Source: Asterias rubens (lineage: Eukaryota). Taken from it: a stretch of 64,000 nt of DNA. Made by a program: the position numbers and the translations under genes. Below are positions 18,479-55,837 of the stretch, piece after piece; positions within the stretch are counted from its first letter, which is position 1, and every line of letters starts with the position of its first letter. The notes under the pieces are model-generated. The model was given only the letters and a program-made list of their open reading frames with translations. It made no database searches and was not told the DNA's origin. Where the stretch lies: positions 12,152,001 through 12,216,000 of the forward strand of contig NC_047079.1 of NCBI RefSeq assembly GCF_902459465.1. The letters run 5' to 3'.

Positions 18479-18530
18479 CAAGTGAACACCAAACACACAC
18501 CAGCAGCACTATAGACATCCTTCCATCCAT
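18479..18530 (-). pseudogene. Ig receptor A0: truncated copy (17 signal-peptide codons plus upstream leader)
   Basis: MDGRMSIVLLVCVWCSL is identical to A1, then the frame runs into unrelated sequence. 18479-19351 duplicates 21117-21989. Confidence 0.85.
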
Positions 18531-19797
18531 TGTATTGAATCTGGTTCCTTGAAGTTGTTTGATGAAGAAGTTGGACGAGGATAGGGTTGGATGAAATAGC
18601 ATGAGCAGACAGACAGCTTGTAGGAATGTAAGAGTGATTGTATTCATGTACCTGACTGACAAGGTAACTTGGTTGTACTTGTTTATAAAGCATCGCACAC
18701 CAGTGAACTTCATCACGCACCGCTTAACTTCATCAATAATTTTGAGATTTGGGACGGGATGTTATTGAGTCATGTAGTCACCAAATCTAAAACTATTTCC
18801 ATTTATTGTGGCGACGATTGATACAGAATTTGCATAACAATAATCAGTGTTTACATTCTAAACGGTGATGTAATGAAAGAGTTAGGTTCGCGTAAATTAA
18901 GGATTTTTGCTACAAACCTAACAAAACTTGGCTGCAATTCCGCATGTTTAAGCGCTATTAAAAAAGTTACTGAAATTACCACCACAAAAATCTAATCGCA
19001 ATGTACTGTACCAACAAATATACAGTTTGTGTTAAATTTGTCCACTGTTTGTAATGTTTTAAGAACCCCCTAAGTTTTTACTAAACACGGGTTGGGTAAA
19101 GGTATTCATAAACATTTTGTAATTATTTTTCTTAAGTATTTTTTGTACCGAGTTAATTGGTTAAAAACACCCGACTTTGTGTAGAATACTATGATTTTAC
19201 CCATGAATTCGGAAGATTTGTCTTCACCGTTTGACCTCGTAAACTTGTTGCTAAATTATTTGTTTTCCGAATGATTTACAATAGATCAAAAGAATATTAT
19301 GAAACTAAATCACTGCACACAAATAATGTGTTTACTTTCAAAAATGGTTCTGGAAAGTAAACGGCCGACCGTGTTAGTTCGCGACGTAAAATTAAAAACC
19401 GTGCAATTTGGAGTGATACTTGTGTGGATCATTATATTCTACTTTTAAAACATCTTTCTAACCATATGCATTTCATAACAAACGGTTTCAAACGCTTTTC
19501 ATAGACCAACTCGTCCGATCCAAGGCAATGTGTTCTTTTAAATGCCATGCACAATGTACAGCGTACATACCATGCACAATTTGTTTGCTTGTTTGTATAA
19601 TGGTCGTAACTGACATACGTGAGATGATGACCACACAATAAAATCATCTTTTACATAAACTGATAAACCTGTAGAAAAGTTTGAGATCGATCGGCCATCT
19701 GGATGACGAGAAAGAAGTGAAAAAGCAAGAACACATTTTGCACGACATCGATTAAGTTTTTTTTTTTTTTAATAAAACGCTTACTGACTTTCCGTAT

Positions 19798-21168
19798 CTA
19801 CTTTAAACCTGGTTTGTAGTAGGTGTGTTTAATGCCAGTTGTTCCTGAGCTTGGTGCTGGGTCAACGTGCACAGTGACTTGGTGATTCCTTCTTTGCTGC
19901 TTGGGATCATGTGGCTGTGGTCGAAGGTAGCCATACTTAGGGCTGTCAGTCTCTACTTCAACCGGCTTGTAGTAGGTATCTTGTGTGGTAGTTGTTCGTG
20001 AGTCTGGTGTTGGGTCAACGTGCACAGCGACTTGGTGATTCCTTCTTTGCTCCTTGAGATGTGGCCGTGGTCGAAGGTAACCATCCTCTTGGCTTTCCTT
20101 CTCTGCTTCTTGTTTGGTAGTTGTAGCCGTAGTAGGTTCTGTGTATCCTGTGTTCTTGTCATCCGTTGGTTGCAGCGTCGTGTAGGGATCAGCTTTGGGC
20201 ATTTGAGATGTCTCGGTCTCTCTGATGACGCGTCTCATTTTGAAGATTTGAAATACACCAAGAATGATGATGATGGTGGATACACTGAGGGTAATTACAA
20301 ACGCTACAATCCATAGATTAAAAGAAGGGGTCTGGTTGGGTAGGGTTTGGGTTGGTGGGTGGGGCTGGTTGGGTTGGGTTGTCTCTGGTTCGATTGATGT
20401 TATTTCATTAGTCGCATCTGTCGAACTTGCTACACTGATTGGTCCAATGATACACGAACGTGTCATACTTGCACCACTCCCTTGTAATACAGAGCAGTTA
20501 AATGCAACACCATCGTCAGCAACAGTCACAGTCAAATTCAATGATAATGTATCCTTACCATCGACTCTTGAATATGTCCAGAGGTGGCTTCTGGGATCAG
20601 TCATTGGATGGGTTTCTATATCTGCAGGTTTACCAGTCTCAGACAGACATCTCAATTGTAGCTCTGTACCGGTGTCTACTGTGATAGGTCCAGAAGGGGA
20701 GCATATCGGGTACGATGGAGCTGACAGGAATACGCTGGATGTAGCTACAATTGTGTTCCCTCCTCCTCTGATAGGGTGGTTGACGTTACAAACATATTCA
20801 TCATAGTCGTCAATCTGCAGATAAGTAATCGTAAAGTCTTGAACAACCATCCCACTCTGTGGATAGGTTTTTTTGAACTTATACCGGTTAATGTTCGTTT
20901 GGTTAGAGTCTTTCCACCACAGAGTAGTATCGGGTTGAGTTGACCTCCACTCCACAATATGGTCCGACTCGAGGTTTGTAGCGTTACACATCATAACAAC
21001 TTGCCTGCCCATCCTACGATCGGCCTCTGGTGTTAAGATCACCGATGTCACCGACACCACTGGTTTGGGTGTTGCAATTGGTTGAGCAGTGACAGCCATC
21101 AGGAGTCCGCCTGCATCAAGTGAACACCAAACACACACCAGCAGCACTATAGACATCCTTCCATCCAT
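19798..21168 (-). CDS. Ig receptor A1: intronless SP-V-C2-TM receptor, 456 aa, Tyr-rich non-ITIM tail, probably C-terminally truncated
   Basis: Signal peptide MDGRMSIVLLVCVWCSL; V domain C..W..FTITYLQIDDYDEYVC; second Ig with 4 Cys; TM LWIVAFVITLSVSTIIIILGVFQIF; tail YTTL-x9-YTEP, 2x GYLRP and 2x TYYKP. Start set at the ATG shared by the paralogs (21168), not 21354. Confidence 0.88.
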   Translation of the reverse strand: MDGRMSIVLLVCVWCSLDAGGLLMAVTAQPIATPKPVVSVTSVILTPEADRRMGRQVVMMCNATNLESDHIVEWRSTQPDTTLWWKDSNQTNINRYKFKKTYPQSGMVVQDFTITYLQIDDYDEYVCNVNHPIRGGGNTIVATSSVFLSAPSYPICSPSGPITVDTGTELQLRCLSETGKPADIETHPMTDPRSHLWTYSRVDGKDTLSLNLTVTVADDGVAFNCSVLQGSGASMTRSCIIGPISVASSTDATNEITSIEPETTQPNQPHPPTQTLPNQTPSFNLWIVAFVITLSVSTIIIILGVFQIFKMRRVIRETETSQMPKADPYTTLQPTDDKNTGYTEPTTATTTKQEAEKESQEDGYLRPRPHLKEQRRNHQVAVHVDPTPDSRTTTTQDTYYKPVEVETDSPKYGYLRPQPHDPKQQRRNHQVTVHVDPAPSSGTTGIKHTYYKPGLK

Positions 21169-21403
21169 TGTATTGAATCTGGTTCCTTGAAGTTGTTTGA
21201 TGAAGAAGTTGGACGAGGATAGGGTTGGATGAAATAGCATGAGCAGACAGACAGCTTGTAGGAATGTAAGAGTGATTGTATTCATGTACCTGACTGACAA
21301 GGTAACTTGGTTGTACTTGTTTATAAAGCATCGCACACCAGTGAACTTCATCACGCACCGCTTAACTTCATCAATAATTTTGAGATTTGGGACGGGATGT
21401 TAT

Positions 21404-21446
21404 TGAGTCATGTAGTCACCAAATCTAAAACTATTTCCATTTATAG
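21404..21446 (-). promoter_or_regulatory. Candidate TATA (CTATAAAT) and AP-1 (TGACTCA) sites in the leader/promoter module upstream of A1
   Basis: TGAGTCA at 21404-21410 and ATTTATAG at 21439-21446. The AP-1 motif recurs intact in the homologous modules at ~18.77, 22.31 and 35.04 kb and is altered at ~30.03 and 33.72 kb. No transcript evidence. Confidence 0.3.
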
Positions 21447-22254
21447 TGGCGACGATTGATACAGAATTTGCATAACAATAATCAGTGTTTACATTCTAAA
21501 CGGTGATGTAATGAAAGAGTTAGGTTCGCGTAAATTAAGGATTTTTGCTACAAACCTAACAAAACTTGGCTGCAATTCCGCATGTTTAAGCGCTATTAAA
21601 AAAATTACTGAAATTACCACCACAAAAATCTAATCGCAATGTACTGTACCAACAAATATACAGTTTGTGTTAAATTTTTCCACTGTTTGTAATGTTTTAA
21701 GAGCCCCCTAAGTTTTTACTAAACACGGGTTGGGTAAAGGTATTCATAAACATTTTGTAATTATTTTTCTTAAGTATTTTTTGTACTGAGTTAATTGGTT
21801 AAAAACACCCGACTTTGTGTAGAATACTATGATTTTACCCATGAATTCGGAAGATTTGTCTTTACCGTTTGACCTCGTAAACTTGTTGCTAAATTATTTG
21901 TTTTCCGAATGATTTACAATAGATCAAAAGAATATTATGAAACTAAATCACTGCAAACAAATAATGTATTTACTTTCAAAAATGGTTCTTTGTTTCAGAT
22001 TCATTTGGATAAAGAAAACACATGTAAAAATATAACATTTTGGAAAACTAATGCAAAACACAAACATATAAATGACAGGATCAATAGGAAAATAAGTGGC
22101 TGCAACTCAATATAACTTCTTATCTAGCTACTATGGTTCAACAATTACAAAAAAGAAACAAAAGTTTTCATTTTGTTCTGCGTCATTTTACAATTTCTAA
22201 ACCGTATCCTGTTTGTTTGTCTGTTTGTTGAGATGGTTGTACAAGTTGCTTGTG

Positions 22255-22390
22255 CTCAGTATCACGCTCCAGTGAGCTTCTATTTTTGAGCTTTGGGATT
22301 TTATGTTTTGAGTCATGTTATTCAAAGAATCGTTATGTCCTATTGCCATAGTGGTGACGATTCAAATAGAATTTGCAGAATAATATTAAA
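22255..22390 (-). pseudogene. Diverged orphan copy of the receptor promoter/leader module
   Basis: atcacgctccagtgagcttc...ttgagtcatgt...tagtggtgacgatt...agaatttgca aligns by eye to the A1 upstream module. No coding sequence follows. Confidence 0.5.
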
Positions 22391-22422
22391 GTAGGATTTG
22401 AAACTTTGCATGGTGGAAATAC

Positions 22423-24934: not shown

Positions 24935-26129
24935 CTAATTGTAAAGATTCTGATATGGTCTCTCAGCTGAACTCGGTGGCTGTCTGACCGCTTCATAGTC
25001 GGTGTTGGTGCTGCCCTCTGGCCGAGCGTAGTCATACTCATGGCTGTCTGTCTCTACTTCAACTGGTTGGTAGTAGGTATCTTGTGTGGTAGTTGTAGCC
25101 GTAGTAGGTTCCATATAGACTTTGTTCTTGTCCTCCGTTGGTTGCAGCTCCATGTAGGGATCAGCTTTGGGGACTTGAGATGCCTCTGTCTTTCGAAGAC
25201 TTTTTATGATATGTCTCATTTTGAAGATTTGAAATACACCAAGAATGATGATGATGGTGGATACACTGAGGGTAATTACAATCCATAGATTAAAAGAAGG
25301 GGTCTGGTTGGGTAGGGTTTGGGTTGGTGGGTGGGGCTGGTTGGGTTGGGTTGTCTCTGGTTTGATTGATGTTATTTCATTAGTCGCATCTGTCGAACTT
25401 GCTACACTGATTGGTCCAATGATACACGAACGTGTCATACTTGCACCACTCCCTTGTAATACAGAGCAGTTAAATGCAACACCATCGTCAGCAACAGTCA
25501 CAGTCAAATTCAATGATAATGTATCCTCACCATCGACACTTGATGATGTCCAGGGGTAGCTACTGTAATCAGTTATTGGGTTGGTTCTTGTTATATCTGC
25601 TGGGTTACCAGTCTCAGATAGACATCTCAAAGGTAGCTCTGTACCGGTGTCTACTGCGATAGCTCCAGAAGGGGAGCATTCTGGATACGGCTGAGGTGAT
25701 GATAGTATAACCTCAGATGTTCCTTCAACATCCACGTACTGTCTAAAGCGTGTTCGAAAAACCAAACAACAAAAGTTAGCATTATAGTCATCAGTCTGCA
25801 GATCGATAATCATTGGTTAAGTTTTGAACAACCATTCCTCTCTCTGGATAAAATGTGGTGTAGAAAAACCGTCTGTTGTACCTTAATGGGTGATCAATCC
25901 GTCTCACGTAACAGATGTCAAAAGTACTCCACTCCACGATGTGATCCGACTCTAGGTTTGTAGCGGTGCACCTAATAATAATCTGCCCACCCAATTTACG
26001 ATCAGCCTCTGGTGTTAAGATCTCAGCAGACACTGTTGGTTGAGCAGTGACAACCATCAGGAGTCCACCTGAATCAAGGGAACACCAAACACACACCAGC
26101 AACACATACATAGACATTCTTCCATCCAT
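24935..26129 (-). pseudogene. Ig receptor A2: frameshifted SP-V-C2-TM gene with a complete class-A tail
   Basis: ORFs 25791-26306 and 24935-25813 join through a +4 nt shift near 25811-25814 (QNLT|IIDLQTDDY versus paralog QDFTITYLQIDDY). Tail has YMEL-x9-YMEP, TYYQP, YDYARP, TDYEAV, PYQNLYN. Confidence 0.85.
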
Positions 26130-26613
26130 TGAATCTGAGTCCTTGAAGTTGCTTGATAAGATAATGAGTGATGATGATAATGAGTGATGAAATAGCATGA
26201 GCAGACACTCAGCTTGTAGGAATATTATAAGTGGTTTATTGTACATGCAATTGAATGACAAATTAAATTGGATGTACTTCCGTGTACTATTATTTTCATC
26301 ACACACCCGTGAACTTCCTCAAAGGGCTCATAATATCACAGGAAAAAGCAACGAGTTTACGTCACTTTGCTTTTCAGAATCGCATTTTTGGCAATTGACG
26401 ATATTTTGTTTAGCATTATAAATAAATGAAGCTTTCTTCAGGATAAAAAAGAAGAAGTTGTGACTGGAAATATTTATGGACAATGTGCATGGCATTTCTT
26501 CACAGCCCCTATCCCCAGTGACATTGATGTTGCAGTCAGTCTTTTGATGAAAGTATTAATAAACATGTTGTTTACAACTTGATTGTGATGAGGGAAGATG
26601 GAACCAGAGTTAG

Positions 26614-26750: not shown

Positions 26751-26846
26751 CTTAGAGCTTGCAGTTCAACATGGTTTAGACATGGAGGAAGAAAGTCTCC
26801 CTCCATGGTTTAGATGGACACAACTACTTTGTTGTTCATGTAAATA

Positions 26847-29813: not shown

Positions 29814-29814
29814 C

Positions 29815-30190
29815 CATGGTTTTGAATCCGATTCCTTGAAGTTATTTGATGGGGAAAGTTGGATGAGGACAAAATGGATGAAATAGCATGAGCAGACAGA
29901 CAGCTCGTATAAGAGTGTTTTAATGTACATGTACTTGACTGGTACCTGTTAACATACAGCACACTCCAGTGAACTTCATCACGCACCGCTGAAGTTCATC
30001 AATAATGTTGAGCTTTTGGATCGGGTGTTATTGAGTCCAGTTCTATTTATAGTCAAATCCAGAACTGTTGCCATTTTAATATAGTGGCGACGATTTACAT
30101 AGAAACTTAACAATAATGTTCAGTGTTAACGTTCTAAGCAGTGATATAATAAAAGAGTTGGGTTTGCGTACAGAGGATTTATGCTACATC
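29815..30190 (-). pseudogene. Orphan receptor leader/promoter ending at ATG-GAT; coding region replaced by a TTAA-family MITE
   Basis: The - strand reads GGAATCGGATTCAAAACCATGGATAG versus paralog GGAACCAGATTCAATACAATGGATGG. The upstream module continues to ~30.9 kb, interrupted by a MITE at 30196-30575. Confidence 0.75.
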
Positions 30191-30195
30191 ATACT

Positions 30196-30575
30196 TTAAA
30201 GACAGTGGACACTCTTGGTAATTGTCAAAGACCAGTCTGCTCACTTTGTATACTCAACATATGCATCAAATAACAAACCTGTGAAACTTTAAGCTCAACT
30301 GGTCGTCGTAGTCGCGAGATAACTATGAAAGAAAAAAACACGAAGTTGTGTGCTTTCAGATGCTTTGATTTATAGACCTCAAAATCTTATTCTGTGGTCT
30401 CGAAATCAAATTCGTGGAAAATTACTTCTTTCTCGAAAACTGCGGCACTTCAGAGGGAGCCGTTTCTCACAATGTTTTATACTATCAACCTCTCCCCATT
30501 ACTCGTTACCAAGTTAGGTTTCATGCTAATAATTATTTTGAGCAATTACCAATATATAGTGTCCACAGCCTTTAA
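30196..30575. mobile_element. MITE family 1 inserted in the orphan promoter module
   Basis: Both TIRs with TTAA. The flanks rejoin to the A1-like sequence gctac...aaacttggctgcaattcc. Confidence 0.8.
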
Positions 30576-32280: not shown

Positions 32281-32426
32281 TCAAAAACGGGTGTTCTTCT
32301 CTAATTGTAAATATTCTGGTATCGTCGCTCAGAATGTTGTGGCTGTGTGAGTACCACTTCATAGCCGGTGCTAGTGTCTCCCTCTTGGCGTTCGTTCTCT
32401 AAATCAACTGGTTGGTTGAAGGTGTG

Positions 32427-33497
32427 TTAAATAGTAGTTGCTTCTGGGTTTGGTGTTGGGTCAACGTGCACAGTGACTTGATGATTCCTTCTTTGCTCAT
32501 TGGGATCATGTGGCCGTGGTCGAAGGTAGCCATCTTGGCTCACGTTCTCTACTTCTTGTATGGTAGTTGTAGCCGTAGTAGGTTCCGTGTATCCTCTGTT
32601 CTTGTGATCCGTTGGTTGCAGCTTCGCGTAGGGATCAGCTTTGGGGACTTGAGATGCCTCAGTCTTTCCAAGACTATTTATGAGACGTGTCTTTTTGAAG
32701 ATTTGAAATGCACCAAGAATGATGGCGATGGTGGATACACTGAGGGTAACTACAAAAGCTACAAGCCATGGGATGTGGTTGGGTGGGTTCGGGGTCTCTG
32801 GTTGGATTTGGATTGGTCCAAAGATACACGAACGTGTCATTGTACCACTCCCTTGTAAAACAGAGCAGTTAAATGCAACACCATCATCAGCAACAGTTAC
32901 ATTCAAATTCAATGATAATGTATACTTACCATCGACACTTGATGACGTCCAGTTGTAGTTACTGGGATCAGTCATTGGATAGGGTTCTATATCTGCAGGG
33001 TTATCCGCCTCAGATATACATCTCAATTGTAGCTCTGTACCAATGTAGACTGGTTTAAGTCCGGAAGGGGAGCACACAGGATACGATGGAGCTGACAGGT
33101 TTACGCTGGATGTAGCTACAATTGTGCTCCCTCCTTTACTGAGAGGGTGGTGGACGTTACAAACATATTCATCATAGTCGTCAATCTGCAGATGATTAAT
33201 CGTAAAGGTTTGAACAATCTTCCCACTCTCTGGAGAACTTTTAGTGACCATAAACCGTATGCTGGAAATGTCCTTTATTGGTTTGTTGTCCCGCCTCCAT
33301 TCAATAAAGGAATCCGGCTGGAGGTTTGTAGCGTTACAATTCATCACCAACTTCCCACCCACGTTACGGTCAGCTTCTGGTGTTAAGATCTCAGCATACA
33401 CTTTTGGTTCAGCAGTGGCAACCATCAGGAGTCCGCCTGCATCAAGTGAACACCAAACACACACCAGCAACACATACATAGACATTCTTCCATCCAT
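32427..33497 (-). CDS. Ig receptor A3: intronless SP-V-C2-TM receptor, 356 aa, with a premature TAA (ancestral stop at 32301)
   Basis: Same domain layout; tail YAKL-x9-YTEP and GYLRP. 41 more in-frame codons (HTFNQPVDLENERQEGDTSTGYEVVLTQPQHSERRYQNIYN) follow the TAA and match the A2 terminus. Confidence 0.85.
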   Translation of the reverse strand: MDGRMSMYVLLVCVWCSLDAGGLLMVATAEPKVYAEILTPEADRNVGGKLVMNCNATNLQPDSFIEWRRDNKPIKDISSIRFMVTKSSPESGKIVQTFTINHLQIDDYDEYVCNVHHPLSKGGSTIVATSSVNLSAPSYPVCSPSGLKPVYIGTELQLRCISEADNPADIEPYPMTDPSNYNWTSSSVDGKYTLSLNLNVTVADDGVAFNCSVLQGSGTMTRSCIFGPIQIQPETPNPPNHIPWLVAFVVTLSVSTIAIILGAFQIFKKTRLINSLGKTEASQVPKADPYAKLQPTDHKNRGYTEPTTATTTIQEVENVSQDGYLRPRPHDPNEQRRNHQVTVHVDPTPNPEATTI

Positions 33498-34778: not shown

Positions 34779-34933
34779 NNNNNNNNNNNNNNNNNNNNNN
34801 NNNNNNNNNNNNNNNNNNNNNNNNNNNNNNNNNNNNNNNNNNNNNNNNNNNNNNNNNNNNNNNNNNNNNNNNNNNNNNNNNNNNNNNNNNNNNNNNNNNN
34901 NNNNNNNNNNNNNNNNNNNNNNNNNNNNNNNNN
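34779..34933. other. Assembly gap (155 N)
   Basis: Run of N directly after a palindromic MITE. Confidence 0.99.
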
Positions 34934-39364: not shown

Positions 39365-41167
39365 TTAACTTTGCAAGAACTGTTTTCTCATAACACTTGC
39401 GTACGTCACTGCATCAGAAGACGAAGGAGAAGCGAGTCCGCCGTCTTGAATCTCATCTGATTGCAAATCCAAATCAGCGTAGACAAGGTGGTCTGGGTTG
39501 TCATGGGTACCCTGCTGCCTCATGGGACGAGAGACCTGGGTATCAGTAGGATCACTGGGTGCTGGGTGGGCTTCCTCCTTGGTAGAGAGACCGGCATCTG
39601 GGTGCATTGGGATTGACACTGGGTGTATTTGGGATGGAACTGTCTGGTTGTCACTGTGAGTTAGGGGATTGCTACGCTGTGCTGATTTAGGCTGATAGGG
39701 TTTAGGCTTGGGGGGTTTTGACCGTGAGGATGGAATTGGTTTGACAGTTGCCGTCGGTTTGGGGGATGTGAGTAACCCGTCACGAGAGGGCCTTGTTGTT
39801 ACATCAGAGACATTAGAAACAGCGTATCGCTGACCGTTATCAGTGGTAGTAGGTTTAAATGATTGGTCTGGTTGCTGCCTCATCGACTCATGAGCAGGGG
39901 GGTGAGCTTGGTATGGTTTAGCGTATATTAGACTTGGATCAGTCGCCTGTGCTCTTTGTGCCGGCATTGTGCCGGACGCGTCAACGTCGCGGTGCTGAGT
40001 GCTTAAATACATGGTATTGTTCTGTAATCCTTCTTGTAACGTACCAAGACCTCCGCATTCATTAAGACTGATCTGAGAATCGTCAAGTCTATTAAGAGTT
40101 TGTTCAGTGTTTGTTTGGTTGTATGACTGTACCGGTTTGGGATCTGAGAATGCGAGGCGACGTTTACGGCAAGTGATGATCAGGATAATGGTGAGAAGAA
40201 GAGCTACGACTGCAGCGGAGACTATACCAGCGATGACTGCACGGCTGAATGGTGACGACGATGGTAACCTAGTGGTTTCGTTGAACGGAGTAAACGGTGT
40301 TTCAGATGGCTGTAAAGACGTAGTGTTGGTGATTGGTGTTGGGTTTCTCATCTCGGTTGATGTCATTGAAGACATAGACGGCATACATGTGGGAGTGGGT
40401 ACCGCTGTTGGCTGAGTTATTGTGATTGGTCCAATGGTACAAGAACGTGCCATATTGGGGAAAAACTGCGCTGATGTAATGGTGCATGTGAATACAATAC
40501 AATTATCAGCTACGCCTGCTATCGAACTAGATGTCCTGATGAGTGTATCGGTGTCAACAGTGATTTGTGATGTCCATGAAGTGAAGCTAGACGTATAAAT
40601 CGAAGTTGTGACTGCTGCTATGACTGCCGGATGACCGCTCTCAGATGTACATCTCATATTCAACACTGTTCCTTCGTTTACTGTAATGGGTCCATCTGGA
40701 GAGCATATAGGGAAGGATGCATTGGGGAAGTAAAACACTGAAAGTGTAACACTGGATGAGGCTATAACGTTGTACGCTCCATCTGGTGTGGGGGAAACGA
40801 CTTTGCAGCCATACCGATTGGAATCTTCCCTTTGGACATTGATGATGGTAAAGTCTTGAACTGTCCTCCCAGTTGTCATATCTTCCTGTGTACTAAACGT
40901 GAATCGTGACTCCGCGGTTACAGTTACATCCCCCAATCTCAAGACACGGTCTGGGTTTGTTGCGCTCCATGAAACTATGTAATCCGACTGGAGGTTCATA
41001 GCGGTGCACCTCAAATCAACCTGCCCGCCCTCCTTACGATCAGCATATTGTGTTAAGAACACCGCAGATACTGTTGTTCGAGCAGTGACAACCATCAGGA
41101 GTCCGCCTGCATCAAGTGAACACCAAACACACACCAGCAACACATACATAGACATCCTTCCATCCAT
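39365..41167 (-). CDS. Ig receptor B1: intronless SP-V-C2-TM inhibitory-type receptor, 600 aa, two ITIMs
   Basis: V domain ..FTIINVQREDSNRYGC; TM AVIAGIVSAAVVALLLTIILIITC; Pro/Ser/Thr-rich tail with LVYADL and VTYASV. Confidence 0.92.
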   Translation of the reverse strand: MDGRMSMYVLLVCVWCSLDAGGLLMVVTARTTVSAVFLTQYADRKEGGQVDLRCTAMNLQSDYIVSWSATNPDRVLRLGDVTVTAESRFTFSTQEDMTTGRTVQDFTIINVQREDSNRYGCKVVSPTPDGAYNVIASSSVTLSVFYFPNASFPICSPDGPITVNEGTVLNMRCTSESGHPAVIAAVTTSIYTSSFTSWTSQITVDTDTLIRTSSSIAGVADNCIVFTCTITSAQFFPNMARSCTIGPITITQPTAVPTPTCMPSMSSMTSTEMRNPTPITNTTSLQPSETPFTPFNETTRLPSSSPFSRAVIAGIVSAAVVALLLTIILIITCRKRRLAFSDPKPVQSYNQTNTEQTLNRLDDSQISLNECGGLGTLQEGLQNNTMYLSTQHRDVDASGTMPAQRAQATDPSLIYAKPYQAHPPAHESMRQQPDQSFKPTTTDNGQRYAVSNVSDVTTRPSRDGLLTSPKPTATVKPIPSSRSKPPKPKPYQPKSAQRSNPLTHSDNQTVPSQIHPVSIPMHPDAGLSTKEEAHPAPSDPTDTQVSRPMRQQGTHDNPDHLVYADLDLQSDEIQDGGLASPSSSDAVTYASVMRKQFLQS

Positions 41168-41669
41168 TGTATTGAATCTGATTCCTTGTAGTTGTTTGAT
41201 AAGAAGTTGGATGAGGATTGGGTTGGATGAAATAGCATGAGCAGACACACAGCTTGTAGGAAATTATTGAGTAATATTGAATGTGCATGCACTTAAATAC
41301 CAAGTTTTGGTTGTATGTGCTTCCGTGTAATAAGCATCACACACCAGTGAACTTCGTCAATGATAATAATATGAACTTAGAGTTGTGTTTTTAAATGAGG
41401 GCCATATTGTCGCGGGTAACTAAATCCGGATCCCACTGCCACACGTAGTAGTGACGATGTACATATAAATTGGAAAATATGCCTCAGGCTGGTTTCATAT
41501 TCAAAGTTTTGAACTCTGAGGTGAATATTGGGAGAGGGTTGCGTGAAAGTAGGATTTTTGCTGCATATACTTGGATGCCGGTTTACGCTTATTTTCATGC
41601 ACCACAGGCCACTACTTTACGTGACTGACAGTGTGAGAAGCACAGCTGTGGTAACTTCAATGAATGTTT

Positions 41670-42160
41670 TGAGTCAAAATAGTTGTTAGCATAACAACTT
41701 ACTTGGTAACAAGCAATGGAGAGCTGTTGATAGTATAAAACAGTGTGAGAAACGGCTGCCTCTGAAGTAAAGTAGTTTTTGAGAAAGAAGTAACTCACTT
41801 AGATATTTGAACTTAATTCGAGACCTCAGCTGAGGTCTAGAAGTCAAGCATCTGAAAGCACAACCTGAGTTGACAAGGGTGTTTTTTCTCCCATAATTCT
41901 CTCGCTCGCAACTTCGATGACCAAATGAGTTCAAATTTTCATAGTTTGGTAGTTTGTTCATGTTGAGATACACCAAGTGAGAAGACTGGTCTTTGAAAAT
42001 TACCAAAGGTTTCCAGGGGTCGATTTCACAAAGGGTTAGGACTAATCCTAACTTAGGACTAGTCCTAAGAGATATCAAAAATGTACAGCTGGTCCTAAGT
42101 TAGGACGGGTAACTCGTCCTAACTCGAGATAAGACTAATCTTAACTCTTTGTGAAATCCG
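41670..42160. mobile_element. MITE family 1 fragment plus a ggggtcgatttcacaaa-type MITE (duplicated at 45590-46088)
   Basis: Family-1 body followed by gatttcacaaag..ttaggactagtcc..ctttgtgaaatcc. The same second element occurs at 5544-5685. Confidence 0.7.
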
Positions 42161-42741
42161 TTCCTGGTGCCTTTAACTGCTCCATTTTTGTTTTGACAAG
42201 AACAAGCTATTAGTTTTTTCTGTTTTTTTTTGTGTGTTGAACCTTTTAGAACGTGTTTGACCCCGGGGAAAGGCAGTGGATATTTTGAGCTCTGTACAAA
42301 AGTATATCATGAAAATAGATATGTACAACAAAAACAGTTCAATGATAAGATATAGGAAGCTAAAACATAATTTTTATTATTTTTAGATTGCCAACACTAA
42401 TGTACATGGTGCTGGGTAAGATCAAACTGAGTGAATTCGGTATTAATTAATGTTACAGCTATAAAACGAAGCGTGTTTAGATATCGGATTTGTTTTTTTA
42501 CAATGCAAGAAATGTGCAGAAGTTTAACAAACAAACAAGTTTTAAAAAGCAAAATAACCAACGATTTAGTGTTTAGTCAAACAGGTCAGTTGTTAATTTA
42601 TTGGTATTTAATTTTATTATGTGGCACAAATTTTGCTATGCCTCGAATCAAGCATTACTCCGGTCTGTATACGTTTAGTAATGACTGAAAATAAATGCGA
42701 TACAAAAACTTGAGTGGTAAAAAGTAAAGCAGCTTGGAAAG

Positions 42742-42967: not shown

Positions 42968-43679
42968 GTGCGTTTAGAGAAACAAGTGCTGCGTTTATGG
43001 AAAAATACGTCACTTTTCATCCACCAATACTTGAATATAAAAAGCGTTAGCACGGTAACGCTTCTCAGATTGTGTATTCCTATAGGGATATTTTTTTCAG
43101 CATGGACATAATATTCGCTCCGAAAATTGTCGGCGATACTTCAAAAACGTGACCACCTTTTGAAATGAAATGTTCAGAGGTTGGTTTAATTGTATGTACA
43201 GTGTATCTACATTTTATATAATAGACGATGTGAACTGTGACATCACATGTTTACAAAAGAGACACCAAGCCTGGACTTCCTGCAGGCACGATTTATACAT
43301 GCAGCCTAAGGGAAGGATACATAAAATCTTATATTTTATTGAGATTGCACTGTCAAACTTTTATCAACTTTTGATATGATAAAATGGGGCACATCTCAAA
43401 ACTTGTCCAGCTTTTACTTTCATGACTCTTGGATTGATGTGGAAATTATGGCACAAAATGTCAACTTGCCCATATGACCAGTGCAGTATATTGCCTGCCA
43501 GCCTAGCCAAAGAATGTACAAGGTCACACTTATTGTAAACAAAGTTCACATGGTATATATGATTAAAACAAAAGATATACAATGCCTATAAGCTTCTCTT
43601 TGAGAATGTTTCTTGTTCTATAAAAAACGTGTTTTTTTTTTCACAGTTTATTGGTTGAACTATGAACTAAGAAATCCCT

Positions 43680-45092
43680 TCAACTTTGCAAGAACTGTTT
43701 TCTCATAACACTTGCGTACGTCACTGCATCAGAAGACGAAGGAGAAGGGAGTCCGCCATCTTGAATCTCATCTGATTGCAAATCCAAATCAGCGTAGACA
43801 AGGTGGTCTGGGTTGCCATGGGTACTCTGCTGCCCCATGGGACGAGAGACCTGGGTATAAGTAGGATCACTGGGTGCTTGGTGGGCTTCCTCCTGGGTAG
43901 AGAGACCGGCATCTGGGTGCGTTGGGATTGACACTGGGTGTGTTTGGGATGGAGCCATCTGGTTGTCACTGTGAGTTATGGGGTTGTTACGCTGTGCTGA
44001 TTTAGCCTGATAGGGTCTATTAAGAGTTTGTTCAGTGTTTGTTTGGTTGATGGACTGTACCGGTTTGGGATTTGAGGTTGCGAGGCGACGTCTACGGCAA
44101 GTTACGATCAGGATAATGGTGAGAAGAAGAGATACGACTGCAGCGGAGACTATACCAGCAATGACTGCAGGGCTGAATGAAGATGATACTAAATTAGAGG
44201 TATCGTTGAACGGAGTGATTGGTGTTGGGTAGCCCATCTCGTGGGGTGGCATTGAAGACGCAGTCAAACATAGTGTTCTAGTGGGAGTGGAGTCTGATGC
44301 GGAGGGGGTTATTGTTATTGGTCCAATGGTACAAGATCGTTCCATATTGGGGAAATTGACTGAAGTAATGGTGCATGTGAATGCAATACAATTATCAACT
44401 ACAACAGCTGTCAAACTAGAAGTCCTGATGAGTGTATCGGTGTCATTAAGAACTTGTGATGTCCATGGAGTGTATCTAGCAGTATAAAACGAGTGAGTGA
44501 CTACTGCTGTGACTGCCCGATGACTGCTCTCAGATGTACACTTCATATTCAACACTGTCCCTTCGTCTACTGTTATGGGCCCAGCTGGGAAGCAGATAGG
44601 GAAGGATGCATTGGGGAAGTAGAACACTGAAAGTGTAACACTGACTGAGGCTACAACGTCTTGCGCTGCTCCTCTTAGTGCGCTCCTCTCGGAACTGACT
44701 GTGCAGAAGTAATCATTAGAATCTTCCCTCTGCACATTGATGATGGTAAAGTCTTGAACAGTCATCCCAGTTATCGTATATTCCGTCGTGTTAAATAAGA
44801 ATCGTGGCCCTAAAGGGGGAACAGTTTCATTTCCAAATCTCAGGACCATCTTTGGACCTTCAGTGGTCCACGAAACAATGTGATTTGGCTGTAGGTTTGT
44901 AGCGGTACACCTTATGTCAACCTGCCCACCCTCCTTACGATCAGCCTCTGGTGTTAAGATCACCGCAGACACTTTCGGATCTGTTGTGGGTGTTACAACT
45001 GGTTGAGCAGTGACAACCATCAGGAGTCCGCCTGCATCAAGTGAACACCAAACACACAACAGCAACACATACATAGACATCCTTCCATCCAT
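43680..45092 (-). CDS. Ig receptor B2: inhibitory-type, 470 aa, short tail, two ITIMs
   Basis: Paralog of B1 with an in-frame ~129-aa tail deletion (LNR|PYQ). PTYTQV, LVYADL and VTYASV are retained. Confidence 0.92.
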   Translation of the reverse strand: MDGRMSMYVLLLCVWCSLDAGGLLMVVTAQPVVTPTTDPKVSAVILTPEADRKEGGQVDIRCTATNLQPNHIVSWTTEGPKMVLRFGNETVPPLGPRFLFNTTEYTITGMTVQDFTIINVQREDSNDYFCTVSSERSALRGAAQDVVASVSVTLSVFYFPNASFPICFPAGPITVDEGTVLNMKCTSESSHRAVTAVVTHSFYTARYTPWTSQVLNDTDTLIRTSSLTAVVVDNCIAFTCTITSVNFPNMERSCTIGPITITPSASDSTPTRTLCLTASSMPPHEMGYPTPITPFNDTSNLVSSSFSPAVIAGIVSAAVVSLLLTIILIVTCRRRRLATSNPKPVQSINQTNTEQTLNRPYQAKSAQRNNPITHSDNQMAPSQTHPVSIPTHPDAGLSTQEEAHQAPSDPTYTQVSRPMGQQSTHGNPDHLVYADLDLQSDEIQDGGLPSPSSSDAVTYASVMRKQFLQS

Positions 45093-47732: not shown

Positions 47733-49493
47733 TCACATAACACTTGCGTACGTCACTGCATCAGAAGACGAAGGAGAAGGGAGTCCGCCATCTTGAATCT
47801 CATCTGATTGCAAATCCAAATCAGCGTAGACAATGTGATCTGGGTTGCCATGGGTACTCTGCTGCCTCATGGGACGAGAGACCTGGGTATAAGTAGGATC
47901 ACTGGGTGCTGGGTGGGCTTCCTCCTGGGTAGAGGGATCGGCTTCTGGGTGCATTGGGATTGACACTGGGTGTATTTGGGATGGAGCCATCTGGTTGTCA
48001 CTGTGAGTGAGGGGGTTGTTACGCTGTGCTGATTTAGGCTGATAGGGTTTAGGCTTGGGGGGTTTTGACCGCGAAGATGGAATTGGTTTGACAGTTGCCG
48101 TCGGTTTGGGGGATGTGAGTAACCCGTCACGAGAGGGCCTTGTTGTTACATCAGAGGCATTAAAAACAGCGTAACGCTGATCGTGGTCAGTGGTTGGTTC
48201 CAATGACTGGTCTGGTTGCTGCCTCAGCGACTCATGAGCAGTAGGGTGAGCTTGGTGTGGTTTAGCGTATATTAAACTCGGATCAGTCGCCTGTGCTCTT
48301 TGTGCCGGCATTGTGCCGGACGCGCCCACGTCGTGGTACTGAGTGCTTAAATACATGTTATTGTTCTGTAATCCTTGTAATGTATCACGACCTCCGTATT
48401 CACTGGGACTGATCCGAGTATTGTCAAGTCTACTAAGATTTAGTTCAGTGTTTGTTTGGCTGTTGGACTGTACCGGTTTGGGATTTGAGGTTGCGAGGTG
48501 ACGTTTACGGCAAGTTACGATCAGGATAATGGTGAGAAGAAGTGCTACGACTGCAGCGGAGACTATACCAGCGATGACTGCATGACTGAATGAAGATGAT
48601 ACTAAAGTAGAGGTATCGTTGAACGGAGTGGACGGTGTTTCAGATGGTTTGATGGAAGAAGTAGGCATTGGTGTTGGGTTTCCCATCTTGGTTGATGGCA
48701 TTGAAGACGCAGTCATACATGGTGTTCTAGTGGGAGTGGGGTCTGGTGCGGAGGGAGTTATTGTTATTGGTCCAATGGTACAAGATCGTTCCATATTGGG
48801 GAAATTGACTGAAGTAATGGTGCATGTGAATGCAATACAGTTATCATCTTCGTCAGCTTTCAAACTAGATCTCCTGATGAGTGTATCGGTGTCTTCAATA
48901 ACTTGTGATGTCCATGGAGTGTATCTAGCAGTATAAAACGAGTGACTGACTATTGCTGTGACTGCCCGATGATTGCTCTCAGATGTACACTTCATATTCA
49001 ACACTGTTCCATTGTTTAATGTAATGGGTCCAGCTGGGAAGCAGATAGGGAAGAATGCATTGGGGCAGTATAAAACTGAAAGTGTTACACTGGATGAGGC
49101 TATAGTGTTGTACGCTCCATCTGTTGTGGGGTCATTGACTTTGCAGACATACCGATTGGAATCTTCCCTCTGCACATTGATGATGGTAAAGTTTTGAACT
49201 GTCCTCCCAGTTGTCATATCTTCCTGTGTACTAAACATGAATCGTGACTCCGCGGTTACATTTACATCTCCCAATCTCAAGACACGGTCTGGGTTTGTTA
49301 GGCTCCATGAGACAATGTGATCCGACTGGAGGTTCATAGCGGTGCACCTCATATCAACCTGCCCGCCCTCCTTACGATCAGCCTCTGGTGTTAAGATCTC
49401 AGCAGACACGTATGGTTGAGCAGTGACAACCATCAGGAGTCCGCCTGCATCAAGTGAACACCAAACACACACCAGCAACACGTACATAGACAT
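47733..49493 (-). CDS. Ig receptor B3: inhibitory-type, ~586 aa, two ITIMs
   Basis: The first ATG is mutated to ATT (49503-49505), so the start is placed at the second Met (MSMYVLL). IVYADL and VTYASV are present; the stop falls one residue after the last ITIM. Confidence 0.88.
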   Translation of the reverse strand: MSMYVLLVCVWCSLDAGGLLMVVTAQPYVSAEILTPEADRKEGGQVDMRCTAMNLQSDHIVSWSLTNPDRVLRLGDVNVTAESRFMFSTQEDMTTGRTVQNFTIINVQREDSNRYVCKVNDPTTDGAYNTIASSSVTLSVLYCPNAFFPICFPAGPITLNNGTVLNMKCTSESNHRAVTAIVSHSFYTARYTPWTSQVIEDTDTLIRRSSLKADEDDNCIAFTCTITSVNFPNMERSCTIGPITITPSAPDPTPTRTPCMTASSMPSTKMGNPTPMPTSSIKPSETPSTPFNDTSTLVSSSFSHAVIAGIVSAAVVALLLTIILIVTCRKRHLATSNPKPVQSNSQTNTELNLSRLDNTRISPSEYGGRDTLQGLQNNNMYLSTQYHDVGASGTMPAQRAQATDPSLIYAKPHQAHPTAHESLRQQPDQSLEPTTDHDQRYAVFNASDVTTRPSRDGLLTSPKPTATVKPIPSSRSKPPKPKPYQPKSAQRNNPLTHSDNQMAPSQIHPVSIPMHPEADPSTQEEAHPAPSDPTYTQVSRPMRQQSTHGNPDHIVYADLDLQSDEIQDGGLPSPSSSDAVTYASVM

Positions 49494-49810
49494 CCTTCCA
49501 TCAATTGTATTGAATCTGATTCCTTGAAGTTGTTTGATAAGAAGTTGGATGAGGATAGGGTTGGATGAAATAGCATGAGCAGACACACAGCTTGTAGGAA
49601 AGTATTGAGTAATATTGAATGTGCATGCACTTAAATACCAAGTTTTATATGTATGTACTTCCGTGTAATAAGCATCACACACCAGTGAACTTTGTCAATG
49701 ATATGAACTTTTAGAGTTATGTTTTTCAATGAGGGTCATAATTTCACAGGTAACTTGAACCCGGATTGTACTGCCACACGTAGTAGTGACGATTTACATA
49801 TAATTTACCT

Positions 49811-52450: not shown

Positions 52451-52610
52451 ATGGGTGCGTTCGTTTAGCTTCCCTGGGTCGACCCCGGTGTGTGGCGATT
52501 TTTTTTTCTCCAGGACGAACGTAGGTAATTATTTGCCCACGTTCGTCATTGAAAAAAAAAACCCGCCACACACCGGGGTCGACCCAGGGAAGCTAAACGA
52601 ACGCAACCTA
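52451..52610. mobile_element. Foldback MITE (gggtgcgttcg TIR family)
   Basis: gtgcgttcgtttagcttccctgggtcgaccccggtgtgtggcg and its reverse complement. Confidence 0.75.
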
Positions 52611-52785
52611 TAAGAAACAATTGCAACGTTGTGACGTCATACATGGCTGTTTTCGAAGCTACGGCTTGGGCTTCAGAATAGAGATGTGGTTATCGCCCGG
52701 CTGTTTGAAGAGCCCTGCACAGCCAGAGCCTTAAACAGAGCCCAAAGCCAAAACCGTAGTTTCGAGAAGGGACTCTGTACCATGC

Positions 52786-53166
52786 TTAAAGGCAGTGGAC
52801 CCTATTGGTAATTACTCAAAGTAATTATTAGCATAAAACCTTACTTAGTAACGAGTAATGGGGAGAGGTTGATAGTATACAACATTCTGAGAAACGGCTC
52901 CCTCTGAAGTGCCATAGTTTTTGAGAAAAAAAGTAATTTTCCACGAATTTGATTTCGAGACCTCAGATTTAGAATTTTGAGGTCTCGAAATCAAGCATCT
53001 GAAAGCACACAAATTTGTGTCACAAGGGTGTTTTTTCATTCATAGTTATCTCGCAACTTCGAAGACCAATTGAGCTCAAACTTTCACAGGTTTGTTTATT
53101 TTATGCATACGTTGAGATACACCAAGACTGGTCTTTGACAATTACCAATAGTGTCCACTGTCTTTA
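52786..53166. mobile_element. MITE family 1
   Basis: ttaaaggcagtggaccctattggtaatt ... aattaccaatagtgtccactgtcttta. Confidence 0.8.
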
Positions 53167-53963
53167 GGTGTGTCCAGTGTACTGATGCTAATGCAATCTT
53201 GTACTGAAAGTTTGTACATAAATGTGAATGTCACTACAATGAAAAGCTTTATACGGTTGAGTGCCTCCGCCCAGTCGCGATAGAGCACACACTTATGCAA
53301 TAGCCATGTAGACTTGTATTAGGCGTCTCATCATTTTTTGACGCAACAGGTAGTCCTTGTTATCATTTTAGACTTGTGTTATGCGTCTCATCATTTTTGA
53401 CGCTACAGTAAGGACAGTCCTTGTTTCACACCACGCTATGAGCCATTTAGGAGGAACTAGTAACGAGTCTAACACATGTCTAAGGAACGACTCAACTTTC
53501 TGAAATTGTCTATTATAACCCTCATGGATTTAAATTTACAAAATGTACACATTGTTTATACGGTGTGCATAGCACGTTCTAAAATGAACATAACTTGACA
53601 ACTGAAATTAAATAGCTTTAAAGCCTGTTATAGTATGCTACATTTGGATATAAGACGCGTGAGCTGTTTTTGGTTTTAAATTAAACTTTGTCAAATACCT
53701 CTTGCTTATAATATCTCAGAGTGCAAATAATGAAAACGCGCACGTGTGAGACGCGCCATGCGTATTCCTGGCCATTGAGATGGCCAAAGGTCTAGTACAG
53801 TATTAGCCTTTTTAAGATATGGTGGACAGTATACGAGTGCACTGTTTGGTTTGGGTGTATACTGGCAAATTCACCAAACCTGTTATTATAGTAATGTTTC
53901 CATCAAAATGTCAAAATTGCGTTTGGTTACACAATGCATATTCAAGTCTAATTCAAGTGCAAT

Positions 53964-54187
53964 GGGTGCGTTCGATTAGCTTCCCTGGCTCGACCCCAGT
54001 CTGCCCCCGGTACGTTCGAATAGCTTTGACGGCATTCCAGGGGCACACCCGGGTCAACCCCCAAGTGCCCTGCTTGTGGAACATGTAACCTGGGGCTGGC
54101 CCGCGGTGCACAACTACACCACGAATGTCAGGGGCTCACCGGAGTGAGCAGGGGTCGACCCAGGGGGAAGCTAATCGAATGCACACT
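53964..54187. mobile_element. Foldback MITE (gggtgcgttcg TIR family) just 3' of the B4 stop
   Basis: gtgcgttcgattagcttccc.. / ..gggaagctaatcgaatgcac. Confidence 0.7.
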
Positions 54188-54205
54188 TTATAACCGTGTT
54201 GATGT

Positions 54206-55837
54206 TTACGTTGTCGTAACAGTTGCGTACACTACTTGACCATCATCGGCTGGTGACGGCTTTGAGATGTCTGCCCTTGTGTCTGCTTGCAAATCCAAAT
54301 CAGCGTAGACAATACCATCTTGGTTGTCATGACTACTAGGCTGCCTCTTGGGTACACTAGAGACTTCAGCATAAGTTGGGTCGTCGGGCAAGATGGTTTC
54401 GTCTTGGGGAACGGTGGGGGATTGGAAAGGCATAAGGTTCTCTTGGTGGTTCAGATTATTGTCAGGAATCTTATGGCTTGATTTGGGCTTATAAGGCTGA
54501 GGTTTTTTAGGTGGTTTGGCCGCCATTGGTTTAACCGTTGCTACTGGTTTACCAGTAGATGCATAGGAGTGGTCTTTGGCTGGTGACGTCACGATATCTT
54601 GATCAAACACAGGGTTATCGTAAGTCTGCTCTGTCGAGATGGGTTGCCTCATCACAGCTGGTGAATTATCCATGTTCGATTTGACTTTATTAGGCTGAGC
54701 GTATATTGGACCTGTTTGTATGTTGGATTCTGAATGTCTTGGTGATGCGGTACGTCGTGGTGATGCAGGATTTGCATCGCGAGTGGTCTGAGATGTAGTC
54801 TGGATCGACTCAAGTCCAGCGTATTCGTTGAAGCTTTGACGGGGGATCTCGGTCGATTCCTCGGGGTTTGATTGACCCGCGCCTAGCTTGGTATCCTTCG
54901 GAAACAGAGCACACTTGAAGAGGCCTCGTCTTAGGCAAATGATTATTAGGATCGTGATGAGTAGAATAGCAGCTACGCCCCCAACGGCTGCCCCTATGAT
55001 CACCGCTAAGTTACTGCTTGGTGTGTTTGGCACAGTCGTAATAGACGTTGTGGATGTTATCATGTTTGTAGTCTCTACACTTCCTATAGTTGTTGCAGTT
55101 TCAGCGACGTTAATGGGCCCGATTGTACAAGAAGCTTTCATTGAAGGGAAATAGAACAGAGATGTAACGGTACAATCAAATGTGATGTTATCTACTGGGG
55201 CATTTACCAATAACATCAATGATGACTCAATCGTGCTCGATCCAACGGTTGATGATGCCCATGTATAGCTATTTGACTGAGCTGGGACTTGGGTTACCGC
55301 TACTGCTACTAATGGATTGCCAATCTCACTTGAGCATTTCAGGTATAAATTCGTTCCTTCATCAACTGTCAGAGGTCCTGCAGGGAAACATTCAGGGAAA
55401 GACGGGCTTGGGAAATATAACACTGAAAGTGTTACCCTTGATGAAGCCACGGCGTTGCTGCCTCCAGTCGAAATTGGTTGGTAGACAGTACACACATATT
55501 CATCAGTATCACTCCTCTGCACATTCATTATAGTAAAATCCTGAACGGTTGAAATGCTGGTATACCGTGTATTAAACACAAACCTTGACTGTGTAGTAAT
55601 TCTAGTCGCACCCCATATTAAGACTTTCTCAGGGTCCTCAGTCCTCCATGCTACGATGTCACCTGCCCCGAGGTTCGTAGCGGTACACGTCATGTCAACC
55701 TGCCCACCCTCCTTACGATTAGCCTCTGATGTTAAGATCACCGCACCCACTGTTGGTTGAAGTTGTGCAGTGACAACCATCAGGAGTCCGCCTGCATTAA
55801 GTGAACACAACAGCAAAATCAACATCATTCGATCCAT
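54206..55837 (-). CDS. Ig receptor B4: divergent inhibitory-type paralog, 543 aa, two ITIMs
   Basis: MDRMMLILLLCSL signal; V domain ..FTIMNVQRSDTDEYVC; TM with GxxxG (GAAVG); PTYAEV, IVYADL and VVYATV. Confidence 0.92.
   Translation of the reverse strand: MDRMMLILLLCSLNAGGLLMVVTAQLQPTVGAVILTSEANRKEGGQVDMTCTATNLGAGDIVAWRTEDPEKVLIWGATRITTQSRFVFNTRYTSISTVQDFTIMNVQRSDTDEYVCTVYQPISTGGSNAVASSRVTLSVLYFPSPSFPECFPAGPLTVDEGTNLYLKCSSEIGNPLVAVAVTQVPAQSNSYTWASSTVGSSTIESSLMLLVNAPVDNITFDCTVTSLFYFPSMKASCTIGPINVAETATTIGSVETTNMITSTTSITTVPNTPSSNLAVIIGAAVGGVAAILLITILIIICLRRGLFKCALFPKDTKLGAGQSNPEESTEIPRQSFNEYAGLESIQTTSQTTRDANPASPRRTASPRHSESNIQTGPIYAQPNKVKSNMDNSPAVMRQPISTEQTYDNPVFDQDIVTSPAKDHSYASTGKPVATVKPMAAKPPKKPQPYKPKSSHKIPDNNLNHQENLMPFQSPTVPQDETILPDDPTYAEVSSVPKRQPSSHDNQDGIVYADLDLQADTRADISKPSPADDGQVVYATVTTT

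Follow-up and report, generated by a model that had tools for sequence, protein, structure and literature searches.

A Cluster of Intron-Free Two-Ig Receptor Genes with ITIM-Type and ITAM-Related Tails in the Starfish Asterias rubens

Gene Content of the Locus

We analysed a stretch of 64,000 nucleotides from the sea star Asterias rubens (LR699109.1, assembly GCA_902459465.3, near 12.17 Mb), called the window below, in which positions are counted from the first letter. A 38-kb part of the window holds seven minus-strand genes, together with fragments, of one family of predicted receptors. Each family protein is made up of a signal peptide, a V/I-like immunoglobulin (Ig) domain, a four-cysteine Ig-like domain, a Ser/Thr/Pro-rich stalk, one transmembrane segment and a tyrosine-rich tail. 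The genes fall into two classes. Genes B1-B4 encode tails that end in two ITIMs (immunoreceptor tyrosine-based inhibitory motifs), and genes A1-A3 belong to a class whose tail appears to derive from one bearing an ITAM (immunoreceptor tyrosine-based activation motif). In the wider family, both tail types are found on related ectodomains.

The positions of all features are collected in Table 1. An initial annotation, made from the DNA letters, had proposed seven co-oriented genes here, and the open reading frame (ORF) calls place all seven on the minus strand at the same sites. It had also described the A and B classes as occupying separate physical blocks, which the coordinates bear out. Its count of seven single-exon genes needs some qualification: the coding sequences of the cluster are intron-free, but A2 is frameshifted, A3 is stopped early, B3 has lost its start ATG and the tail of B2 is shortened. 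The truncated copies and orphan promoters that it saw around the genes come to one of each. In the public annotation A2 is LOC117302220 [Asterias rubens], which was one of the proteins returned by the first homology search.

Table 1. Positions of the receptor genes and related features in the window.
Feature	Position	Strand	Description
A1	19798-21168	-	intact, 456 aa, Tyr-rich repeat-type tail
A2	24935-26129	-	pseudogene/damaged gene; frameshift within Ig1; read as two ORFs
A3	32427-33497 (with tail remnant 32304-33497)	-	356-aa ORF, premature TAA
B1	39365-41167	-	600 aa, ITIM-type; LVYADL 39470-39487, VTYASV 39392-39409
B2	43680-45092	-	470 aa, ITIM-type; ITIMs 43785-43802 and 43707-43724
B3	47733-49505	-	590 codons, ITIM-type; ITIMs 47817-47834 and 47739-47756
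B4	54206-55837	-	543 aa, ITIM-type; IVYADL 54296-54313, VVYATV 54218-54235; NPVF 54605-54616
Deleted-CDS copy of A1 (CDS, coding sequence)	18123-19329	-	blastn to A1 flanks 98-99%
Orphan upstream-region copy	29819-30196	-	blastn 73-74% to A1/A3 upstream regions; without CDS
Conserved upstream region, A1 instance	21169-21360	-	about 190 nt adjoining the ATG; candidate core promoter or 5' untranslated region
Assembly gap	34779-34933	.	155 N, between A block and B block

The assembly gap lies 1.3 kb from A3, upstream of that gene, and 4.4 kb from B1, downstream of that gene. No family homology was found at its edges by blastn or tblastn, and the sole ORF that spans it consists of N. The gap is intergenic and none of the genes relies on it. 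The placement of the A block next to the B block, however, depends on the scaffold join across the gap.

Architecture of the Proteins

The alignment of the seven window proteins spans the signal peptide, the two domains, the stalk, the transmembrane segment and the tail. The signal peptide is common to all seven, as had been annotated, with a variant form in B4 (MDRMM..CSLNAGGLLM). Ig domain 1 gave Pfam matches to Ig_3, ig, V-set and I-set that were near threshold, and its variability peaks in the C'-D, DE and FG loops. Domain 2 gave only C2-set_2 at E 0.4-0.9. Because nothing in Pfam was significant, we named this domain Ig-like from the AlphaFold model and its cysteine pattern. A search of NCBIfam gave no match, as expected for an animal protein.

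The AlphaFold model of B1 residues 1-340 (mean predicted local distance difference test score 66) has beta sandwiches at residues 33-143 and 154-251, after which come a stalk modelled as disordered and a transmembrane helix. Two Ig-fold domains are what stands of the V-C2 ectodomain proposed at first, since the model of domain 1 is V/I-like without a C'' strand and domain 2 lacks a significant Pfam match. The proposal of a second Ig domain with four cysteines and of a single transmembrane segment agrees with our data, as the four cysteines, which make two pairs, are invariant across 21 family members and the helix is modelled.

The ITIM Pair of the B Genes

We found that B1-B4 each end in (L/I)VYADL followed by VTYASV or VVYATV, and that the two tyrosines are 26 residues apart. 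Both motifs of the annotated ITIM pair are therefore present in all four. Inhibitory members of paired receptor systems carry ITIMs of the form (I/V/L/S)xYxx(L/V/I), usually two and at a spacing suited to tandem SH2 domains, and on sequence evidence B1-B4 fit this description. We also considered the two motifs as the halves of one ITAM. This was ruled out, because 22 residues lie between the four-residue motifs, compared with 6-12 in an ITAM.

The tails of the B proteins are 140-270 aa long. Among 13 B-type tails, every one whose end is present retains the two ITIM tyrosines and the YA(D/E)L core, and the remaining tail sequence is about 35-45% identical. Other conserved blocks are xYA(K/Q)P, NPxF, KPxAxVKP, PYKPK and YAQV. 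In two members the distal motif is TLYASI, which matches an immunoreceptor tyrosine-based switch motif. Two of the window genes have changed individually: B2 has lost about 130 aa from the interior of its tail, and B3 has ATA where its relatives have the shared ATG, its next methionine being codon 5.

The A Genes and the Origin of Their Tails

The A tails hold all the motifs that had been listed for them, namely YxxL-x9-YxxP, GYLRP, TYY(K/Q)P, TxYxxV and YQN. The A1 tail contains YTTL-x9-YTEP, two copies of GYLRP and two of TYYKP. It represents a repeat-type subclass that is also seen in the annotated A. amurensis proteins P0017 and P0018. The A2 tail is of the YQN type, with YMEL-x9-YMEP, TYYQPV, YDYARP, TDYEAV and YQN.

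DNA alignment with A1 and A3 showed that a 4-nt insertion near 25818 breaks the frame of A2 in Ig1 and that its F-G region is garbled. The NCBI model LOC117302220 bridges this lesion with a modelled intron. Barring an assembly error at the insertion, A2 is a pseudogene. Beyond the premature TAA of A3, part of the former tail survives in frame (32304-32426) and still reads TGYEVV and YQN. A1 is called by NCBI as a single-exon gene from an upstream ATG. Both A1 and A2 have an in-frame ATG upstream of the shared start (regions 21169-21354 and 26130-26246), and NCBI uses the upstream one. We argue that the conserved methionine of MDGRMS is the real start, because the B genes have no in-frame upstream ATG.

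Many relatives of about 390 aa combine the same ectodomain with a transmembrane segment and a short tail that bears a canonical ITAM, YxEL-x7-11-YMxL; XP_072046751 of Amphiura filiformis is among them. The Patiria protein P0013 has YVEL-x10-YMEL, the A. rubens protein LOC117302085 has YTEL-x10-YTEL, and A. amurensis P0093 likewise carries a canonical ITAM. In a joint alignment, both ITAM tyrosines and the first leucine are invariant, and their columns match those of the membrane-proximal A-class motif YxxL-x9-YxxP. This column match argues that the A-class tail derives from an ITAM-bearing tail.

LOC117302085 lies at 10001-11870 of locus L002 (LR699109.1, about 3.35 Mb), on the same chromosome as the cluster and 8.8 Mb from it. 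It is a single-copy gene with a C-terminal YQNI and is about 90% conserved with P0093. The gene span is greater than the coding length, so that an intron is probable here, in contrast to the genes of the cluster.

The Family Beyond the Window

A word-based search returned one protein of Patiria, one of A. rubens and 17 of A. amurensis, the last spread over at least six chromosomes; most of these proteins have A-type tails. One further protein, from ENA, was of the B type. A word search with the tails only gave a single fragment, and ITIM-type relatives surfaced only with an index-free profile search of representatives. This search returned 700 matches at E<=1e-3, the weaker of which may include generic Ig proteins.

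Full-length ITIM-type proteins include XP_071805797 and XP_071805432 of A. amurensis and XP_022090403 and XP_022090203 of Acanthaster planci, with more in ENA assemblies. XP_038076270 of Patiria miniata is another of these, and the annotated protein stops just past the first ITIM. The ITIM pair is conserved across asteroid orders. All the named matches that we looked up (about 60 names) are from sea stars or brittle stars. The family appears to be lineage-specific and expanded, and not a one-to-one orthologue of nectin/CADM-like proteins. The family coding sequences of A. amurensis are single-exon, gene length being 3 x aa + 3, and those on ENA contigs are likewise intron-free.

B4 has a one-to-one orthologue in A. 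amurensis (locus L005), with a protein that is 92% identical and a ratio of nonsynonymous to synonymous divergence (dN/dS) of 0.45 overall and of 0.29 for the tail part. Relative to this orthologue, B4 evolves under purifying selection. At the A. amurensis locus (CP134969.1, about 4.43-4.45 Mb), the B4 orthologue stands head-to-head with the ITIM-type gene of P0023, whose ectodomain is of the A1 type, and a third, truncated ITIM-type ORF lies nearby. This gene set indicates that the content of the cluster differs between the two Asterias species.

Exchange of Tails between Related Ectodomains

We built a tree from the ectodomains only of 35 proteins. The tail types are interspersed in this tree, and its starred branches force at least five switches. 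One case is P0043 (ITIM) and P0051 (ITAM-like), which are encoded on the same A. amurensis chromosome. Their signal peptide, Ig1 and Ig2 are largely identical, and their stalk, transmembrane segment and tail are unrelated. B3 and P0001, and likewise A1 and P0023, follow the same pattern of a largely identical ectodomain and then an unrelated stalk, transmembrane segment and tail; B1-B3 as a group are paired with P0001, which bears the opposite tail. In P0003 and P0020 the stalk is common up to the transmembrane segment, and the transmembrane segment and tail are unrelated.

Such predicted receptors, in which a shared ectodomain is combined with the opposite tail, present the defining pattern of paired receptors. 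The exchange of tails is not exon shuffling, because the coding sequences are intron-free.

Turnover of the Genes in the Window

B1-B3 form tandem units of 4.0-4.4 kb in which the intergenic DNA is 94-100% identical. When an origin from a retrogene, transposon or virus was considered, the tandem units showed no long ORFs besides the family genes. A region of about 190 nt lies upstream of A1-A3 and B1-B3 and at two orphan or deleted copies, and not upstream of B4; its copies are 74-90% identical. B4 is the oldest copy.

In the deleted copy of A1, the 5' flank of A1 and its first 17 codons (18480-18530) are joined straight to the A1 3' flank, and tblastn found only a fragment of the signal peptide there. 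A 300-nt direct repeat of 100% identity, with copies 2638 nt apart, is a further mark of this copy. Downstream of the orphan upstream region, tblastn gave no family match. Together with the frameshift of A2, the nonsense mutation of A3 and the nearly identical tandem units of about 4 kb, the deleted copy and the orphan promoter are signs of birth-and-death evolution.

Synonymous divergence (dS) between A1 and B1 is about 0.05 in the signal peptide and 1.4 in Ig1. Therefore, the 5' end has been homogenised. B3 is a mosaic by the same measure: its Ig1 is nearest to B1, and its Ig2 and the aligned part of its tail are nearest to B2. This mosaic divergence among the copies shows gene conversion or unequal exchange. 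In old comparisons (B1 or B2 with B4; A with B), dN/dS was about 0.3-0.6 where dS was unsaturated. In recent paralogues, it was 0.5-0.9 or more, from few substitutions.

One DNA-like sequencing run (X5) has near-zero contig depth at B2 (43600-44599) and normal depth at B1; two other runs cover both genes. B2 may vary in presence or absence between individuals, contig depth alone being no proof of absence.

Expression and Annotation

Neither B1 nor B4 has an annotated product in the records for this assembly, alternative starts included. Annotation misses intron-free receptor genes here, with B1, B4 and A3 all lacking a recorded product. RNA-seq reads of a congener (about 96% DNA identity) cover the B4 coding sequence at about 5x, compared with about 0.5x for its upstream flank, and no splice joints were seen. 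A run of uncertain type tiles 53558-55885, the B4 region. In addition, one 151-nt contig of B4 (54808-54957) is present in a poly(A) metatranscriptome of marine plankton; it has 2 mismatches and covers a part close to the transmembrane segment. This contig may come from sea star larvae. These data lend weak support to an unspliced B4 transcript. One run labelled as RNA has almost no depth on the gene body of B1.

Relation to Known Receptor Systems

Foldseek and a sequence search of the PDB gave only generic two-Ig relatives at 11-20% identity, which were Dpr/DIP, Neph/SYG-1, nectin/CADM, CEACAM and antibody chains. The sea star family is a member of none of these groups. Among them, nectin/CADM, Neph/SYG-1 and Dpr/DIP are the best structural matches to the tandem Ig ectodomain of the sea star proteins. 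The TM-scores from Foldseek were low because the interdomain orientation is uncertain (predicted TM-score, pTM, 0.38). The initial annotation had set against its own reading the case of one-to-one orthology to an adhesion family of the nectin/CADM/nephrin-like kind. No such orthology was found, as the searches gave nothing beyond these generic matches.

Nectin and CADM have three Ig domains (V-C2-C2), PDZ/FERM-binding tails and conserved one-to-one orthologues. Membership in this group was rejected: the sea star proteins have two Ig domains rather than three, they are only 11-20% identical, nectin/CADM is not among the best PDB sequence matches, the tails end in ITIMs, and the expansion is lineage-specific. 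Membership in the SIRP family was rejected as well. The tail motifs are alike, but the number of domains differs from the V-C1-C1 ectodomain of SIRP, and no SIRP chain was among the best 60 PDB sequence matches or the best 50 Foldseek PDB matches. The ITIM tyrosine spacing of about 26 residues also resembles that of SIRP-alpha, PECAM-1, PD-1 and KIR, and the motifs of SIRP-alpha are close in wording (xTYADL.., xEYASV).

The sea star family resembles the vertebrate paired receptors (KIR, LILR/PIR, SIRP, CD300, Siglec and teleost NITR) in that these are clustered, fast-turnover type I Ig receptors with related ectodomains on opposite tails. For a cis ITAM in the receptor's own tail, there are vertebrate analogues in CEACAM1 versus CEACAM3 and Fc-gamma-RIIB versus RIIA. 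However, the sea star family has no detectable sequence homology to the vertebrate paired families beyond the generic Ig fold, and its two Ig domains are of a distinct type, with an additional cysteine pair. Its coding sequences are intron-free, and its activating type would have no charged transmembrane residue but its own ITAM-derived tail (YxxP in the window). An evolution independent of the vertebrate paired families is plausible, since no homology to any of them was detected.

Work on echinoderm immunogenomics has centred on the expansions of TLR, NLR, SRCR and Transformer genes. Our literature search turned up no description of echinoderm Ig receptors with ITIM or ITAM tails. Compared by description, two other invertebrate systems are the nearest analogues. 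FcoR, the fester co-receptors at the fuhc locus of the invertebrate deuterostome Botryllus schlosseri, is a clustered Ig superfamily group with variable gene content and with long tails that carry an ITIM, a hemITAM or a core tyrosine, and its authors link it to allorecognition (PMC12065747, PMC12582321). It differs from the sea star family in having a V-Ig, a sushi and two C2 Ig domains, in its multi-exon genes with a motif switch by alternative splicing, and in its fester partners. Huene et al. (2022, PMC9546547) described Alr of Hydractinia, a large clustered Ig superfamily family with ITAM- and ITIM-like tail motifs. Alr differs in being cnidarian and in its domain types, and its genes are not known to be intron-free.

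The sea star family would be, with Botryllus FcoR and Hydractinia Alr, the third invertebrate lineage with ITIM/ITAM logic on variable Ig receptors. A third lineage bears on the question of whether this logic is ancestral or was assembled repeatedly. As a conserved and expanded family of ITIM/ITAM type, these genes are testable candidates for inhibitory and activating recognition in a non-chordate deuterostome.

Interpretation and Alternatives

We consider it fairly probable that the cluster belongs to a multigene family of type I receptors in which two signalling types sit on interchangeable ectodomains, and in which the two types would signal in opposite directions, be expressed on coelomocytes and serve recognition. 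The architecture holds as real, and it is both conserved and paired; from it we infer the signalling and an immune role.

Recombination among the intron-free paralogues, which breaks them after Ig2 or within the stalk, has time and again put ectodomains together with either tail, and the shared 5' region is homogenised as well. Birth-and-death turnover results from tandem duplication, deletion, frameshift and nonsense mutation. On the B tail, a Src-family kinase would phosphorylate the ITIM pair, the tandem SH2 domains of a SHP-2-like phosphatase would dock there, and signalling would be dampened. The canonical ITAM of the Patiria, LOC117302085 and brittle star proteins could recruit a Syk-family kinase. 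YxxP is preferred by Crk/Nck-type SH2 domains, not by Syk, and the window A tails, with YxxP, TxYxxV and YxN, would more likely engage adaptors of the Crk/Nck/Grb2 type. The receptors may function in self/non-self or microbe recognition on coelomocytes.

The initial annotation had proposed a paired family of ITIM versus activating receptors. This proposal gains from the repeated swapping of tails on related ectodomains, from the conservation of the ITIM pair and from the alignment of the A motif with the ITAM. Several observations weigh against it. Within the window, the second half-site of A1-A3 is YxxP, not the canonical YxxL/I, and further YxxP motifs are abundant. The A and B ectodomains of the window are about 40% identical and are not mutual nearest relatives, the partners with opposite tails being found in A. 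amurensis. No charged residue, as would be needed for pairing with an adaptor, is present in the hydrophobic transmembrane cores listed for A-type members. Two of the three A genes in the window (A2 and A3) are damaged. Matches to ITIM and to YxxPhi (where Phi is a hydrophobic residue) are short, and they overlap with endocytic sorting signals. The dN/dS of the recent paralogues fits relaxed constraint as well as diversification.

The records of expression point in the same direction. For the B genes and A3, the records of this assembly contain no product, and the public annotation leaves the A3 site without a gene call. The RNA support for the family is thin and tissue-blind. Apparent RNA support for B1 was dropped, because the runs with a high share of matching words covered the intergenic DNA too and were thus genomic-like.

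Karp and Hildemann reportedly described allograft rejection in echinoderms in 1976. The paired receptor reading can be extended to this phenomenon, the family then being the receptor system behind rejection in sea stars and brittle stars: germline-encoded, polymorphic, copy-variable ITIM/ITAM receptors on coelomocytes that would integrate opposing signals in a missing-self manner like that of natural killer cells, with an independent origin and with diversity from recombination that re-pairs ectodomains and tails. Sea stars and sea urchins reject allografts, and PMC9763293 names no receptor for the rejection. We regard this extension as speculative and rather unlikely.

Among the alternatives, the one that survives best is that the proteins are signalling receptors with a non-immune role. 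Their task would be adhesion or recognition between cells, be it in nervous, epithelial, larval or reproductive tissue, as for SIRP-alpha, PECAM-1, PZR, nephrin/Neph and Dpr/DIP, in which tyrosine motifs tune the signals of adhesion. We think this possible, if doubtful. The best structural matches are two-Ig proteins of the Dpr/DIP, Neph1/SYG-1/Rst and nectin/CADM groups, but identity to adhesion proteins is just 11-20% and no specific family was matched. Similar ITIM pairs are present in the broadly expressed SIRP-alpha and PECAM-1, and the B4 fragment in the poly(A) plankton metatranscriptome hints at expression in larvae. Against this stand the rapid lineage-specific expansion, the tail swaps, the pseudogenes and the loop-focused variability, all of which are typical of immune or allorecognition families rather than of conserved orthologues with an adhesion role.

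A main role of the tyrosine motifs as YxxPhi/NPxF signals for endocytosis or sorting, with the tails steering the trafficking of scavenger or uptake receptors instead of opposing phosphotyrosine signals, is improbable. The B tails exceed what YxxPhi asks for, as their two C-terminal motifs have a fixed tyrosine distance of 26 residues and conserved -2 and +1 positions ((I/L)VYADL and VxYA(S/T)V), and a canonical two-site ITAM lines up with the tail of the other type. It is true that every ITIM match is also a YxxPhi match, that the B tails have a conserved NPxF block, and that chance could plausibly give one ITIM match in a tail.

A decaying array that is poorly expressed or unexpressed, with the functional family members elsewhere, is similarly improbable: the lesions of A2, A3, B3 and B2, the truncated and orphan copies, the lack of products for B1 and B4 and of a gene call at A3, and dN/dS values near or above 0.6-0.8 among B1-B3 would fit it, but four ORFs of 470-600 codons are still open despite an inter-copy dS of 0.1-0.4, purifying selection acts on B4, whose A. 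amurensis orthologue is annotated as a protein, and congener RNA-seq reads cover the B4 coding sequence.

Other Features of the Window

The segment 16000-18000 is GC-richer and strongly C-skewed, and it contains a proline-rich low-complexity ORF at 16421-16798. Directly upstream of B4 lie two tandem-repeat arrays, at 56271-58139 (unit about 112/335 nt) and 58362-59149 (unit about 193 nt). Most of the family genes are flanked by short dispersed repeats of about 200-300 nt, which are found in either orientation and reach very high depth in all runs. These repeats are located at 41600-42200, 53928-54248 and 55854-56067, and in about 15 more places.

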